From assembly GCF_001194135.2 (NCBI RefSeq), contig NC_068995.1:37946760-38007635 (forward strand): a stretch of DNA of 60,876 nt, read 5' to 3'. The stretch comes from Octopus bimaculoides. Its lineage: Eukaryota. The position numbers and the translations under genes are program-made. Below, one piece after another: positions 9,977 to 47,628 of this stretch. The notes under the pieces are model-generated. The model ran no database searches, was not told the DNA's origin, and was given only the letters and a program-made list of their open reading frames with translations. How positions within the stretch are numbered: position 1 is the first letter of the stretch; every line of letters begins with the position of its first letter.

Positions 9977-11167
9977 ATGACATTTGTTCAATACTTCGTC
10001 CTGATTCTGACTACATTTCTATCGGTAGTAAATTGTGACCCAATGTACAAAGATGAGTTAAGGTTGAAAGACAAATTATTATCTAATTATACGAAACATA
10101 TAAGACCTGTCGTTAATTTAACTGCTTCGGTCGATATAAACGCAGAATTATGGCTTGAATTACTCTATGGTTTGGACTACGTAAAAAATATACTTGTGGG
10201 CCAGTACTGGATTCAATTTCAATGGACGGATGAATTCTTGAGATGGAATCCATTAAACTACAATAATATTACGCGTATCTATCTACCTATAAATAAGGTA
10301 TGGACCCCGTCTATTACAATGTTGAACACATTAATGGAAACACAATCTAAAAATAATTTTCTCGAAATGACTGTGGATTTTAATGGATCTGTCACAATGG
10401 TGGAAATTAAACTACTACAAACCTTTTGTGAAATATATGTTTACAATTACCCTTTTGATGCACAGACATGCGTTATTTCTATGGGTATCCCATCGCATAA
10501 ATTTCAAGATACAAAAATAAAAGAACTTTCATGCTATCGTAAAAGTGATATATCTGACTCTGAATGGGGTATCAGCTTCTCTTGTAATGTACATGGCACA
10601 AACAACTCTTTCTCGTACGCATCCGCTACGCTGTACTTACATCACCAAATAAAGATGGGTACCATCGCTATGCTGATTCCAACAATAATGATGACTATAT
10701 TAACTATCTCTATTTTTCTCCTGCCACCAGAATCTGGTGAGAAAGTTTCTCTAGCAATGACAATATTTTTATCAAATGTCTTGTACTTTCTACAAATCCA
10801 CAATGGCTTGCCAAAAAATTCAAATCAATTCTCGCTTCTTACCTTTTATTTAATGATATTATCACTGTTAAGTGGTATCGCTACTCTTGGTTCGGTGATT
10901 ATAACCAGGCTGTATGTAAATCAGTTAGTTGACAATAACAAATTGAACCCGTCGCACCAAAGTAAAACTTCGTTAAAAAACATTAATCAAATTGCTGATA
11001 TTTCAACAGTGTCTAAGGAAGAATTTAATCCTGTACCTAAAGCAGATATTTCAAGGAAAGGGATGAAAAAAGGTATTTTCCATTACAGCCGACTTGATGG
11101 TATATTCCTAAAAATTATGATTCTAACATCGGCAATAGTTTGCATTTTCTTTATGATTCTGTCTTAG
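9977..11167 (+). CDS. Cephalopod chemotactile receptor (atypical nAChR-like Cys-loop cation channel subunit), 396 aa, single-exon CDS (CR-A)
   Basis: Signal peptide; N-terminal helix and RP motif (LLSNYTKHIRPV); W-x-D-x-x-L-x-W and VWTP motifs; Cys-loop C151-x13-C165 (CEIYVYNYPFDAQTC); M1-M2 LLPPESGEKVSL; short M3-M4 loop; terminal M4. Lacks loop A Tyr, loop B Trp and loop C vicinal CC. Collinear without gaps with 36097-37296 through M3. Confidence 0.93.
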   Translation: MTFVQYFVLILTTFLSVVNCDPMYKDELRLKDKLLSNYTKHIRPVVNLTASVDINAELWLELLYGLDYVKNILVGQYWIQFQWTDEFLRWNPLNYNNITRIYLPINKVWTPSITMLNTLMETQSKNNFLEMTVDFNGSVTMVEIKLLQTFCEIYVYNYPFDAQTCVISMGIPSHKFQDTKIKELSCYRKSDISDSEWGISFSCNVHGTNNSFSYASATLYLHHQIKMGTIAMLIPTIMMTILTISIFLLPPESGEKVSLAMTIFLSNVLYFLQIHNGLPKNSNQFSLLTFYLMILSLLSGIATLGSVIITRLYVNQLVDNNKLNPSHQSKTSLKNINQIADISTVSKEEFNPVPKADISRKGMKKGIFHYSRLDGIFLKIMILTSAIVCIFFMILS

Positions 11168-12149
11168 AACAGAATGACATTTTTACATTTAAATTATAAA
11201 GTGATCTTGCATTGTGAATCTTCAATCATATATGATACTCCACTCATTCCGAGACAGACATAAATGTTTAACCTTTGCTTCACACATGGTTCCAAATAGC
11301 GAGGATATATGTACAGAGTTGTCACATACTACCCATTAGAAATGCTTAATTTAAATACTAACGCAAGATTTCCACTCTATGAAACGAACATTGAAAACTA
11401 ACTATTTTACTTCGCTCAATTTAGCCTCATGCTTATAATGATTTTCACATGTTATCCTCTATGCAAGTCTACAAGTCAAATCGTGGGCAATTGAAAGCAT
11501 ATATATATATATATATATATATATCAAAGGTGGGAGAGAAGACAGATTAGATTATCGTTCTCCTACTCCGGTCATAATTGGGTATACAATTAATATATAC
11601 ATATATATTTCCTTTATTATATCCCAGTTATACAGAAAATTACATTGGATACAATAAATTAAATTAAAATCTCGAGCAAGTGAGATGTTTACAAGATTTA
11701 CAATAATTCTTGTATGCAGTAAACTTTAATAGAGTATGGATATTTAAAATTGTCCTCGAATGAAATGAAATAAAGTAGTTCACGAATGAAATAAATATAT
11801 AGTCAAGTGACATATATTACGATCCTTTCAGGGTATATATAATGGTCAGGCGTTTTCCGTTTCAGAAAATATAATGGCCAGATGTCTTTCAGATTCTTTT
11901 CATCTGGCTGAATCAACTATCTTAATTTCATGAAGAGAAACTCTAGTAATTTTCTATGTTAAAGATGAGGTTAAATGTGTGTCCGAGGGAAGGGTTAATG
12001 AGGTATAAGATACATGTCTGCTGATATAAAGGGGATGATAGGAGAGAGAGGGAGAGAAAAAATAAGGTTAGTATTGGGATGTGTGTTGATAGAAATGTAT
12101 GTTTTTATATTGTTTTGGGAGGGAGGTGGTGGGAGATGGTGCTAGCTCA

Positions 12150-14075
12150 CATATTTACAACAAATGCGAAGATCATGCTTGCTCAAATATTTACAACAAA
12201 TTCAAAGAAAGAATTTCTATGATTCAAGAAGGTAAACTGACGACAAAGTACCAAAATACGCTGACGTTAAAGGAAAGCAATCACTTAACCAACTTTGAGA
12301 TGAAAACCAGCACCTTTATGGATTAAAGAAAGTTCACAAATCCAAAGAAATCCAAAACAACACAAAATGCAAAAATACATCATATACCGATGTGCCAAAA
12401 CTGCCAGCTTTAAAATGGCGCCCAATTTTTGCTGGTCCACCTTCATGCACACGTCTAAGCAACCCATTAGATACCATTCTGAAACCCCTATTTAAAAATT
12501 GCAAAGCTACATCAGAGATGATATGGAATTCCTGAACTATACCCTCCAGAAAGTACACCAAGACACAATCTTAGTCAGCTTTGACGTAACAAGCTTATAT
12601 ACGAAAACTCCACACGACTTAGGAATTGAAGCTGTTCACTTGTGGATTACATAGACTCAGGTTCCATTTCAGAGAGATTCCCGAAAGAGTTGATTTTTGG
12701 AAGGTCTCAAATGAATATTGGAGAACAACCACTTCCTCTTTCATACCTAACTGTATTTACAAATAAAAGGAACGACCATTGCACAAAAGGAGCCCAACAT
12801 ATGCGTCACTCGTTATGGATTACCTAGAGGCAAAACAATATTGCCAGCTGCAGCAAACGTTCAGTCACGACTTCGCCACTTACATTAATAGCAACTGGTG
12901 ACCTTACCTAGATGATTGCTTCATTTTCTAGGATATAAGGTAAGACCTGCAAAACTTCTATTCCATCATAAACAGGCTTCACGAACCAATACAATTTACA
13001 ATGAAATGTAATAGAAAGGAACTACCGTTTCTGGATATCGTTATCATTAAAAAATGGGAAAATATCGAAACAGCTATTTTACAAACCAATAGGCACACAC
13101 CAATACTTAAAATTCCGATCAGCACATTCCTCACAGGCCAAAAGGAAATTCCCTTTAAGCTGGCAAGAGGCAGCTGCACTATAGTTACTCACCATACACC
13201 ACAGCAAATAAGACTATATGAACTAAAATCATTCCCTAAAAGGCAAGAATATCCTGTGAATCTCACCAGTACGGCTATCTCCAAGGCCCGGAACGTTCCG
13301 CTGACACCACTGAGAAAAGCAAACCAAGAAAATAAAAAGGAAAAAACAGTTATCTCTTGTGTCGTCAGTCAGAAAGCAAGGGACTTCAACATTGTCAAAG
13401 TCGCCAAACGATATCTCACAATTCGCCAGCAATGCACCAAAATGAATGCACTCATAAAAGTCTCACAAATATAATATAAGAGACGCTAAGCACCGAACCT
13501 AAAAAACCTGCTCCCCAAGGCGAAATTTACGTCTAATATTGAACCAATGCAAGTTCAGAAATGCGGGGACACGCGATGTTGAACTTGTGAATACTTTGAA
13601 GAGGGTGGATAAATCTCCTTGAAAAACAATGAGATTTTCAAAGTTAATGCAAACATGAATTGCAAAAAAAAAAAGAAAAAAAAAGAAGAACTAGTCTATG
13701 CGCAACTTGCCTCCAATGTAAAGAATACAATATTGGTGAAACTGGAACGGGACTACATGGCAGAGTTTGTTTATAGGAAAAACAAATTAGATACCCTCTG
13801 TCAGAAACACTCCTTGCAGTGAACACTTCGCATAATTCGGAACGGAACAATATTAAGAATATCCCCCTTTCCTTAAGTTATGGTCGGACAACGAACATTT
13901 CCGAAAAAATAAAGAAGAATTCTTAGAAAGTACAAAGCACTACTGCACACAAAACAATGATATTGCACCGCACTATAACAGGACTCTCACTTTGTTTTTT
14001 TTTTTTTAAAAAAAGAACGCACATACACTTTCAATCATTTGATCTTTGAAGAGGGAAACAACCCCAGGCGGTACA
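12150..14075 (+). mobile_element. Penelope-like element (RT plus GIY-YIG endonuclease), frameshifted
   Basis: KWRPIFAGP, LVSFDVTSLYT, YLDDCFI, IQFTM...ELPFLDI, IPFKLAR; then CGDTRC*TC and CKEYNIGETGTGLHGRV (GIY-YIG region). Confidence 0.9.
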
Positions 14076-46411: not shown

Positions 46412-46444
<33 letters not shown>

Positions 46445-47200
46445 CACTTATATATATATATATACATATATATATACACACATGTAATATTTCAACTCTT
46501 CTGTGGTAATATCTTTTATAGACACTATATCTCTACTCAGGGCTTTAAACAATCTAATTGCATTGTGTTTTGTGTTATTTTCACATTTTCCCCGCTAGAA
46601 TTTCATATTTACAATCTGGTTCATACTAAAAGATATCTCTCATACACATGCACATATTTTCGAACGGCAATGTCACAGATGTGTGTAAATTAGATAGGAC
46701 TGTTGCCTTTATTCTTATTTGTGGTAATATTCTCTTATTCTTGATAATATATCAATAAATTTCACTGTGAAAATTCATATTGCTTCTGATGTCCCTTCGT
46801 CTGGCGACTAATGTTTCTCTTTTTGCCGTTAGTATAATTTTACTATTTTTGAAATGTTTCCTTCGAGCCCTTTCTGTTTGAATTGAAAATTTGATTATGT
46901 AAAATGATCTAAAGAATCACTTATTTATTTTCATTTTTCATTTCAGGTTTCTGTTTCATCCATTTACATCAAAGGCGCCTATATGCTTTACCACTTAAAG
47001 CATCAACAAGGAATATAATATATCACACAGATATTTTACGTTATATATTTAGAAACAAATTTTGTAAGAAATAAATTTTAGATTATGTTGTTCAACAGAA
47101 TTGCGACTATATTGAATGGCATATATATCAACTTTAACTGACTAGACGTATGTTCCCAATACAGTGGCAAATTATTTTCAGATATTACACTGATATTTAA

Positions 47201-47628
47201 ATGAGAATAATATTTCACGTTCAGCTTCTCTGCAATTTTCATAAATTCCTACGTAAAACAATGTTTAATAGATAGTGCTTTCATTCTTCACGTAAAACGC
47301 CATGCAGTATCGTAAAAGAAGATAATGTCTATATTGTCAGTAGGAGAAAAATTGAATCCGTCAGTAGGAGAAAAATTGAATCCGTCATATAAAAAAATTA
47401 TCAAATGTATAAAACTACGAATATTTCAATACCTTTCACATTACGATCTGAAAAGATAAATCAGGTTGAAAACTTTTCAAGTAATTAAAAGGAGTAAGGG
47501 CATTTTTAATTTCGTTCGACTTGATGTGATATTTCTAAAAGTTCGCATTCTTACAGAGGTATTGATTTCTGTATATTTTCTGCCAATGTTGCTTACATAT
47601 CCACCTGAACCGCATCAACAATGTATAA
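47201..47628 (+). pseudogene. Internally deleted, frameshifted chemotactile receptor relic (CR-C): degenerate N-terminus joined to the M3-M4 loop and M4
   Basis: 47466-47657 frame reads KGIFNFVRLDVIFLKVRILTEVLISVYF versus CR-A KGIFHYSRLDGIFLKIMILTSAIVCIFF. 47337-47390 reads EKLNPS versus CR-A NKLNPS. No ECD core or M1-M3 sequence is present. The 5' limit (ATG 47201) rests on weak similarity. Confidence 0.78.

Follow-up and report, generated by a model that had tools for sequence, protein, structure and literature searches.

A segment of the chemotactile receptor array of Octopus bimaculoides with two intact single-exon genes and a 3'-terminal relic

Introduction

Among recent cases in which a neurotransmitter receptor became an environmental chemosensor, that of the chemotactile receptors (CRs) is the best studied. 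The family, which has 26 members in O. bimaculoides, is derived from nicotinic acetylcholine receptors (nAChRs); its genes are intronless and arranged in tandem clusters, and its ligands are hydrophobic (PMC11526382). Few of the receptors have been cloned so far (bioRxiv 10.1101/2025.03.03.641191), and only a handful of the 26 have also been tested. The closest described system to the two genes reported here, A and B, is CRT1 (CR518; PDB 8EIS, 9E6B-D, 9YI4), which belongs to the same species and clade and has the same architecture, including a signal peptide, a ligand-binding domain (LBD) with a Cys-loop, a short loop C without Cys-Cys, the segments M1-M4, and a short cytoplasmic loop. The residues C116, A172, and H174 are common to CRT1 and gene B; nevertheless, A and B are paralogs distinct from CRT1, and their pocket residues differ from those of CRT1. 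Squid CRB1 (PDB 8EIZ), a cephalopod sensory receptor that is also nAChR-derived, has the fold of A and B and is their second-best fold match and third-best sequence match, but the distance is far greater, with E of about 1e-41 to 1e-45 and 28% identity when the folds are aligned. Canonical nAChRs (human alpha7 and Torpedo alpha1) share with A and B the pentameric Cys-loop fold, the Cys-loop, and the cation-type SGEK pore motif with the -1' Glu. In contrast to them, A and B lack the Tyr/Trp residues of the acetylcholine (ACh) site and the loop C Cys-Cys, have a very short cytoplasmic loop, and are encoded by intronless genes in tandem.

In its genomic arrangement, the CR array resembles the chemoreceptor arrays that evolve by birth and death (vertebrate ORs, V1Rs, and T2Rs; insect GRs and IRs), which are likewise compact or intronless co-oriented clusters (PMC11526382). 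In both cases, pseudogenes and transposon debris are interspersed among the genes, and the ligand part evolves fast while the membrane part is conserved. The encoded protein of the CR array is, however, an ionotropic Cys-loop channel and not a GPCR or GR/IR.

Gene content of the window

The window, i.e., the whole stretch of DNA analyzed (60,876 bp), was mapped to approximately 37.947-38.008 Mb of O. bimaculoides CM046615.1. It very probably represents a segment of a CR tandem array under birth-and-death evolution, containing two intact genes for putative cation-channel subunits in which the ligand site has been replaced. The features of the window and its surroundings are listed in Table 1. 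The two intact, co-oriented single-exon receptors with gap-free, collinear coding sequences (CDSs) reported by the first-pass annotation were recovered as uninterrupted ORFs with both Pfam domains, and their products align collinearly with 47% identity. Neither gene A, gene B, nor the relic contains any of the 10 assembly gaps of the window; therefore, the question of whether a gap disturbs the reading frame does not arise.

Table 1. Features of the window and of the surrounding CR array.
Feature	Position in window	Position on CM046615.1	Strand	Remark
P0008		37.85 Mb	+	Array CR
P0019		37,933,499	+	Array CR
P0025 pseudogene		37,938,883	+	One nonsense; just upstream of window
Decayed CR relic		Between P0025 pseudogene and gene A	+	Just upstream of window
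Gene A	9977-11167	37,956,736	+	Intact single-exon CR subunit gene, 396 aa
RT fragment	28968-29426		+	Retrotransposon debris in A-B spacer; RVT_1 E 6.8e-6, 26.4 bits
Gene B	36097-37296	37,982,856	+	Intact single-exon CR subunit gene, 399 aa
CR relic	47336-47627	Between gene B and P0007	+	3'-terminal fragment, ~85-95 codons; part of cytoplasmic loop and M4
Retrotransposon remnant	55166-56813		+	Downstream of relic; RT-domain ORF 55166-55669, C-terminal ORF 56292-56813
P0007		38,047,762	+	Array CR
Assembly gaps	6372-6472, 17706-17715, 28154-28730, 29821-29967, 31702-32527, 39289-40052, 41550-42147, 46267-46405, 51054-51451, 59367-60147

Both genes encode the Pfam domains Neur_chan_LBD (PF02931) and Neur_chan_memb (PF02932), with E-values of 6e-33 and 3e-12, respectively, in gene A, and both retain the 13-residue Cys-loop (C151-C165). 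The product of gene A consists of a signal peptide, the LBD with this Cys-loop, M1-M3, a short cytoplasmic loop, and M4. Each CDS is a single ORF that aligns collinearly with CRT1 over its full length, signal peptide through M4, and no splice joints were present in the RNA data, indicating that both genes are intronless. CRT1 is the best solved relative of A and B both by sequence (E 1.5e-110 and 49% identity for gene A, E 4.5e-144 and 57% for gene B, over the full length) and by fold (8EIS; E 1.9e-28 for the AlphaFold model of gene A, pLDDT 70.9). The RNA depth for the two genes was about 2 (low-depth contigs or reads); for gene A, two runs gave a single 187-nt contig plus a small number of reads, and gene B was covered at a low level in four runs. 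Contigs of X3, an independent O. bimaculoides run, were identical to the window over gene A, except for a 50-bp break at 10697-10746.

The first-pass annotation had suggested that these paralogs may be uncharacterised; both loci already have public gene models. These models, and likewise that of the gene B ortholog in O. sinensis, are all N-truncated and devoid of the signal peptide. The model of gene A (P0024, 374 aa) begins at M23, and that of gene B (P0001, 342 aa) begins at M58 and lacks the first 57 residues; both probably carry generic names of the acetylcholine receptor type. The exact full-length A and B proteins were absent from a collection of 15 billion proteins, which contained truncated models only. 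Due to this truncation, expression constructs and phylogenies built on the public models would be defective. In O. sinensis, all 399 codons of the gene B ortholog (L002:9830-11029), including the signal peptide, are open; the proteins are 83% identical, with a dN/dS of 0.52 and a dS of 0.15.

The first-pass description of the surrounding DNA as transposon-rich agrees with the presence of two RVT_1 fragments and several families of interspersed repeats. The RVT_1 match in the A-B spacer falls under the 29.6-bit cut-off and adjoins the gap 29821-29967; the RT-domain ORF downstream of the relic (33.3 bits) is above the cut-off. The C-terminal ORF of the same remnant is multi-copy, its part 56346-56813 having relatives with 48-57% identity on other assemblies. 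Among the 16 non-receptor ORFs searched against Pfam, 14 gave no significant match, and neither tRNAs nor Rfam families were found in the window.

The 3'-terminal relic

The first-pass annotation had also proposed one dead receptor copy. It is real, lies on the same strand as A and B, and is disabled, but only a 3' fragment of it is present: the LBD and M1-M3 are lacking, so that approximately 80% of the gene is missing from the 5' side and about the last 20% is left. The lesions include an in-frame TAA (47457-47459), the loss of the terminal stop (the next one is TGA at 47655), and a 24-bp tandem duplication (47336-47383). Homology together with disabling lesions identifies the fragment as a pseudogene, without the attribute "processed" being claimed. 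In the tblastn search of the window, 47367-47621 (+) alone matched CR C-termini (E 1.7e-6 with gene B and 3e-5 with gene A); a CR profile match at 47472-47597 and an nhmmer match were also obtained. More than 20 CR proteins are matched, all by their C-termini only, and the match ends where the stop codon of these CRs lies. The motifs 'KLNPS' and 'KGIF..RLD.IFLK..ILT' are common to the alignment. The relic was confirmed in X3 by one 1266-nt contig across 46518-47760.

The missing 5' part was not found by tblastn, nhmmer, or the unfiltered CR profile on six-frame translations, and no CR-like sequence was detected in the read sequence of 46406-47316 with the CR profile without filters. It is plausible, if somewhat doubtful, that the relic is not a decayed complete gene but either a 3'-only duplicate, produced by unequal crossing-over within a CR gene, or a chance match. 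Only the last ~20% is detectable, and the better conserved M1-M3, which would be expected to survive longest, are missing from the read sequence. Moreover, the relic diverges from A and B (28-38% aa) to a degree similar to that seen between A and B in the same region, which argues for truncation rather than uniform erosion. A chance match is nevertheless unlikely, given the shared strand, the common end at the stop position of the extreme C-termini of all these CRs, and the tblastn score of 41.6 bits. As for a partial duplicate, the flanks of the relic share nothing with those of A and B beyond simple repeats and the coding match itself, so that no flank similarity marks a breakpoint, and a later deletion or insertion removing the 5' part is equally possible. 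Decay of a complete CR gene is the preferred origin of the relic.

Evolution of gene A

The ortholog of gene A in a species with ~95% identity is ungapped and stop-free, with 396 codons open. The substitutions between the two are distributed unevenly: the LBD contains 24 nonsynonymous and 3 synonymous changes (pN/pS 2.05), while the transmembrane domain (TMD) contains 8 and 6, respectively (pN/pS 0.39; Fisher p 0.042 for heterogeneity), with an overall pN/pS of 0.97. Neither O. sinensis nor O. vulgaris yielded a 1:1 ortholog of gene A. The best O. sinensis match, P0023, was considered as a positional ortholog and rejected, its dS being 0.43 compared with 0.15 for the gene B pair; P0023 pairs instead with the neighbouring pseudogene L003:15385-16569 (72% identity, bootstrap 99).

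It could be supposed that gene A has escaped constraint and is turning into a pseudogene rather than being a working receptor, its open frame being only historical. An overall pN/pS close to one, the single CRT1 pocket residue retained out of 15, the scarcity of RNA, the lack of a detected 1:1 ortholog in the two species, and the adjacent nearest paralog, already a pseudogene, are in line with this. Such decay is nonetheless improbable. All codons are open in two species with 0 indels, whereas ~4 would be expected (P about 0.016) from the neutral, non-coding flank, in which the same relative shows 3.4 indel events per kb (3 in the 871 bp of 46466-47336; 8 in 745 bp in another relative). A and B are each free of indels and stops over about 1.2 kb when compared with the ~95% identical relative. 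In addition, the difference in pN/pS between TMD and LBD is unexpected under neutral decay, divergence drops at the ATG itself, from 6 differences in the preceding 28 nt to 2 in the 126 coding nt that follow, and every invariant residue of the family is present.

Gene A is thus best regarded as an intact CR gene. Since it retains one of the 15 pocket residues (F212), has an LBD pN/pS of ~2, and has no ortholog found in O. sinensis, a tentative and on balance unlikely reading is that it represents a lineage-restricted, rapidly diversifying CR with an almost wholly rebuilt pocket and a ligand class unlike the terpenoid, steroid, and microbial-metabolite ligands of CRT1. The pocket region of gene A contains P172, S173, G170, W59, W78, R188, and K189.

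Organization of the array

The co-oriented CR array spans at least 200 kb around the window on CM046615.1, and the region 37.85-38.05 Mb contains at least six intact CR genes and three pseudogenes or relics, all on the plus strand. Single-exon, co-oriented genes in tandem with pseudogenes correspond to the pattern reported for CRs (PMC11526382). The distance between the starts of A and B is 26,120 bp. The spacings of 26 kb (A-B) and 11 kb (B-relic) are approximate because each spacer includes ~1.5 kb of estimated N, and order, orientation, and spacing across the seven gaps depend on scaffolding. The A-B spacer contains four gaps and the B-relic spacer three, all flanked by microsatellites, and in an assembly so rich in gaps the co-oriented arrangement might be taken for an artefact of scaffolding. 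This is very improbable: the CR genes that were mapped on this chromosome all have plus orientation over more than 200 kb, each feature of the window lies within a contig of 4.6-11 kb, and the homologous O. sinensis pair (P0023 and P0003, ~42 kb apart) is likewise co-oriented in gap-free loci.

The pseudogene with one nonsense codon and the decayed relic upstream of the window support the earlier proposal of a birth-and-death segment, in which a pseudogene and relics lie among intact co-oriented genes. The array very probably evolves by tandem duplication, fast divergence of the LBD, and loss, the losses being the 3' relic of the window and these two upstream copies.

Phylogeny, ligand site, and pore

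The first-pass annotation had proposed BLASTP and phylogenetic comparison with cephalopod CRs, and both placed A and B with CRT1. In the NJ tree (distance method, 391 columns, 200 bootstraps, outgroups from search hits only), they fell inside the octopus CR clade containing CRT1 (bootstrap 100), which was separated from other lophotrochozoan nAChR-like proteins (93). Gene B grouped with its O. sinensis ortholog (95), and gene A belonged to the P0019/P0023/P0025 subclade (100). The sister clade P0026-P0030 was tried as squid CRB-type and rejected, as P0027 matches CRT1 with 1.5e-89 and CRB1 more weakly than 1e-40.

The losses in the ACh site described earlier were exact in the residue alignment. 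The loop A Tyr position is occupied by L116 in gene A and C116 in gene B, and the loop B Trp position by P172 and A172, respectively, with H174 present; loop C is 10 residues shorter and lacks the vicinal Cys-Cys, as in CRT1. Consequently, A and B do not carry the set of residues that defines a canonical nAChR alpha subunit (loop A Tyr, loop B Trp, and, in loop C, Tyr-x-Cys-Cys and a second Tyr): they retain the Y190 equivalent (Y214) but lack Y93, W149, C192, C193, and Y198. In the alpha7 and Torpedo alpha1 reference sequences, the canonical residues fell at the canonical numbers. The pore sequence SGEKVSLA-T/M-TIFLSNVLY is near-identical to that of CRT1, and the -1' Glu is kept. From the 15 named residues of the CRT1 pocket, gene B keeps six (W142, C170, A172, L173, D188, and F212), and the vestibule residue E104 of CRT1 is replaced by D in gene B and S in gene A. 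Pockets so unlike that of CRT1 (6/15 in gene B and 1/15 in gene A) imply that a different ligand tuning is to be expected.

That A and B are ordinary neuronal nAChR subunits, as the generic names 'acetylcholine receptor subunit ...-like' borne by homologous octopus proteins imply and as the Pfam domains and overall fold common to nAChRs would allow, is hardly credible in view of the missing aromatic box and loop C Cys-Cys, the intronless CDSs, the CRT1 clade membership, and E-values that weaken by 75 to 115 orders of magnitude from CRT1 to nAChRs (1e-35 or weaker for nAChR/5-HT3). Judging from the pore and pocket, the CR subunits A and B may assemble into pentameric cation channels, either by themselves or together with further CR subunits, and these would be opened in sucker sensory cells by poorly soluble contact ligands rather than by ACh. 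The analysis establishes the family to which A and B belong, their gene structure and place in the array, the lesions, and a reading frame conserved across species; the function as channels, the class of ligand, and the site of expression are inferred.

Significance

The gene family has already been published, and the reading of the window as part of its array is correct, real but not new. The segment adds no new principle and offers practical corrections and leads; the corrected full-length gene models and the fast LBD evolution in gene A are new here. With its intact genes, pseudogene with one nonsense codon, and truncated relics, the locality resolves birth-and-death turnover down to single base pairs. 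As a candidate for strong diversification of the ligand pocket, gene A would, if the rebuilt-pocket reading is true, be a good test case for the origin of new chemotactile specificities within a tandem array.

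Organization of the Chemotactile Receptor Array

The window carries two intact single-exon chemotactile receptor (CR) genes, gene A and gene B, on the plus strand, as described in the first-pass annotation. Their uninterrupted reading frames are collinear, share 47% identity, and both contain the ligand-binding (PF02931) and transmembrane (PF02932) domains of neurotransmitter-gated channels. None of the ten assembly gaps lies inside either CDS or the third, 3'-only CR-like feature (the relic); therefore, frame and continuity across gaps are not an issue for the coding parts. Contigs from X3, an independent run of the same species, matched gene A without differences, but were briefly interrupted at 10697-10746, where M1-M2 is conserved among paralogs. 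The order and orientation of features in the window depend on scaffolding, and the earlier spacings of 26 kb and 11 kb stand as estimates, because each spacer includes roughly 1.5 kb of N, which makes the exact distances uncertain.

The truncated public model of gene B (P0001) was mapped to record CM046615.1 (58.16 Mb) of the O. bimaculoides assembly GCA_001194135.2, where the first base of the window is 37,946,760. All CR features mapped there are co-oriented in a tandem array that spans 200 kb or more, comprising intact genes, a copy with a single TGA, and old relics. The P0025 copy is the paralog nearest to gene A (60% aa); its sole disabling lesion is the TGA at codon 43, within the conserved IRP motif. 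It is represented in databases by a 339-aa (P0025) or a 177-aa model. In O. sinensis, the orthologous gene (P0023) is intact; the TGA may be a polymorphism or a base error, or the copy may have become a pseudogene very recently. Just downstream of P0025 in O. bimaculoides and of P0023 in O. sinensis (L006:13083-13784), there is a badly decayed CR relic, which covers aa 67-300 at about 27% identity. Since this relic is found in both species, it is older than the O. bimaculoides/O. sinensis split. The O. sinensis homologs P0023 and P0003 are co-oriented and about 42 kb apart on CM016874.1; a further partial CR copy was observed at L006:1045-1491. The mix of intact genes, an apparently young pseudogene, and old relics matches the birth-and-death pattern proposed earlier. 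CRs have been described as nAChR-derived, intronless, and tandem-clustered, with 26 in O. bimaculoides (reviews; PMC11526382).

Coordinates of CR features, gaps, and repeats in the window and of neighboring CR copies on CM046615.1
Feature	Window position	CM046615.1 position	Strand	Remarks
P0008		start 37,850,625	+	intact
P0019		start 37,933,499	+	intact
P0025 copy (L003:15385-16569)		37,938,883-37,940,067	+	full length, one TGA; ~7 kb upstream of window
Decayed CR relic (L003:16904-17564)			+	badly decayed; directly after P0025 copy
Gene A	9977-11167	start 37,956,736	+	intact; 396 aa
Gene B	36097-37296	start 37,982,856	+	intact; 399 aa
Relic	47336-47627	~37,994,100	+	3' fragment
Relic, 24-bp tandem duplication	47336-47383			lesion
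Relic, in-frame TAA	47457			lesion
P0007		start 38,047,762	+	intact
RVT_1 fragment	28968-29426		+	in spacer
RVT_1 fragment	55166-55669		+	runs on into multi-copy ORF, to 56813
Interspersed repeat, three copies	4161-4547, 15391-15639, 30306-30682		same strand	250-390 bp; 84-90% mutual identity
~1.1 kb element, inverted pair	6965-8086, 33719-34909		+, -	66-74% identity
Assembly gaps, first five	6372-6472, 17706-17715, 28154-28730, 29821-29967, 31702-32527			
Assembly gaps, last five	39289-40052, 41550-42147, 46267-46405, 51054-51451, 59367-60147			

The relic had been reported as a third, dead copy of the receptor gene. Its CR derivation and disabling lesions were borne out, and its status as a whole copy was not. 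CR-derived sequence is recognizable only at 47367-47621 (tblastn within the window, E 1.7e-6 with gene B and 3e-5 with gene A), with a CR profile match at 47472-47597 and matches to the C-termini of more than 20 CRs. The alignment begins in the post-M3 loop, with "KLNPS" common to gene A, crosses M4 ("KGIF..RLD.IFLK..ILT"), and ends at the stop-codon position. In addition to the tabulated duplication and TAA, the terminal stop is lost, and the ligand-binding domain is wholly absent, as is M1-M3, where conservation in the family is highest. A full-length decayed copy was ruled out: no CR similarity was detected in the approximately 930 bp of read sequence between the gap end at 46405 and the relic, which was confirmed by one 1266-nt X3 contig across 46518-47760 spanning the relic and its upstream flank. 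As these 930 bp are real sequence, the relic is a truncated 3' fragment amounting to about 20% of a gene, which arose either by partial duplication or by later truncation.

Repeats and Mobile Elements

The transposon-rich setting noted earlier was supported by two reverse-transcriptase (RVT_1) fragments and several interspersed repeat families. The multi-copy ORF at 56292-56813 (+) contains a Cys/His motif, and other assemblies contain relatives of its part 56346-56813 at 48-57% identity. The three-copy interspersed repeat is like a SINE in size; no tRNA-like part was found in it using ARAGORN. ORFs of the inverted ~1.1 kb element contain the motif 'DV(E/D)RLYL.RK.G.RG', which we take to resemble the C-terminal part of a non-LTR retrotransposon ORF2; these ORFs had no Pfam match. 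The ORF at 58632-58886 (-), containing 'RSPDLITCDFYLWGY', resembles the C-terminus of Tc1/mariner-type transposases, with no Pfam match at E 0.01. Microsatellites are abundant, and those of the TA/CA type, translating as YIYIYI or CVCVCV, are located at the edges of all ten gaps (e.g., 28127-28153, 39175-39288, and 46406-46510), indicating that the gaps reflect collapsed repeats and not absent unique sequence. No tRNAs or Rfam families were detected in the window.

Family Assignment and Ligand-Binding Site

Among all solved structures, the best match by a wide margin was octopus CRT1 (PDB 8EIS), with E values of 1.5e-110 for gene A and 4.5e-144 for gene B, followed by the squid sensory receptor CRB1 (~1e-41 to 1e-45) and then by 5-HT3A and nAChR subunits (1e-35 or weaker). 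The AlphaFold model of gene A had a pLDDT of 70.9, with the extracellular domain scoring high and the cytoplasmic loop low; in a fold search, it likewise retrieved CRT1 first and CRB1 second. In the NJ tree of all database relatives, both genes fell inside an octopus-only clade with CRT1 (bootstrap 100), set apart from other lophotrochozoan nAChR-like proteins. The comparison with CRs and nAChRs suggested at first pass placed both genes with the former.

Residues were compared in an alignment that included CRT1, Torpedo alpha1, and human alpha7; in the latter two, the canonical residues landed on canonical numbers, and the same relations were obtained in HMMER alignments to PDB chains. The ACh-site residues were absent as claimed: the loop A Tyr site (Torpedo Y93) is L116 in gene A and C116 in gene B, the loop B Trp site (W149) is P172 and A172, respectively, and loop C is 10 residues shorter, without C192, C193, and Y198. 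The Y151 site is occupied by His in both, and both retain the Cys-loop (C151-C165). Their pore sequence is almost identical to that of CRT1 (LLPPESGEKVSLA-T/M-TIFLSNVLY) and includes a -1' Glu, as is usual for cation channels. The binding pocket is not conserved: 6 of 15 CRT1 pocket residues are retained in gene B and 1 of 15 in gene A. The CRT1 numbering offset of 20 was checked on 16/16 residues named in bioRxiv 10.1101/2025.10.28.685082.

Gene Models and Transcription

A large protein collection contains no exact full-length entry for gene A or gene B, only truncated models. The public model of gene B (342 aa) starts at M58, leaving off 36097-36267, and that of gene A (P0024, 374 aa) starts at M23, leaving off 9977-10042; the O. 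sinensis ortholog of gene B was modeled from the same internal Met58 (L002:9830-10000 left off). These three truncated models are without a signal peptide, and the upstream codons are open and conserved. The O. sinensis DNA is open across 399/399 codons, including the signal peptide (83% identity), a contig from another octopod codes for the full 399-aa protein P0002 (75% identity), and the divergence of gene A from a close relative falls abruptly at the ATG (9977), from 6 differences in the preceding 28 nt to 2 within the initial 126 coding nt. From these data, the full-length ORFs are the true CDSs.

Transcripts of gene B were seen as low-depth contigs in two runs, and two RNA-seq runs from 2026, sampled at ~6%, contributed read pairs; gene A was represented by one 187-nt RNA contig and a few reads. 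No splice joints were found in these low-depth RNA contigs and reads. Just downstream of gene A, a short simple-repeat-like stretch (11461-11742) reached RNA and DNA contig depths of up to ~28,000. A gene A 3' UTR signal was ruled out, as the reads continue into unrelated sequence, which indicates a dispersed repeat or microsatellite.

Selection and Orthology

Comparison of gene B with the O. sinensis ortholog gave a dN/dS of 0.52 at a dS of 0.15. In X5, a DNA run of a ~95% identical relative, both genes have ungapped orthologs free of stops and indels; across the non-coding stretch 46466-47336, the same run showed 3 indel events, with 7.5% of positions substituted. In X4, a run of another related organism, the same stretch had 8 indel events in 745 bp, and gene B contigs had none in 1176 bp. 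No 1:1 ortholog of gene A was found among O. sinensis or O. vulgaris proteins, with ~22 kb of the O. sinensis interval outside the comparison; its best O. sinensis match (dS 0.43) is P0023, the ortholog of the neighboring pseudogene.

In the ligand-binding domain of gene A, 24 nonsynonymous versus 3 synonymous changed codons were counted (pN/pS 2.05), compared with 8 versus 6 across the membrane and loop regions (pN/pS 0.39); the two parts differ at Fisher p 0.042, on small counts. The corresponding domain of gene B had 21 versus 7 (pN/pS 0.70). The changed sites include pocket positions 59, 187, and 210 and loop A position 116 in gene A, and pocket positions 57, 78, and 189 in gene B. The gene A domain counts are also compatible with neutral evolution (binomial p 0.17). 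Diversifying selection on CR pockets is reported in PMC11526382, and the changes in both genes, small in number, fit that report.

Taken together, the data support the window being part of the O. bimaculoides CR array that is already known, and it is not new in kind. Of use beyond that are the correction of both gene models to full length, a precise anatomy of the relic and of the neighboring pseudogenes, and the signal of very fast evolution in the gene A ligand-binding domain.
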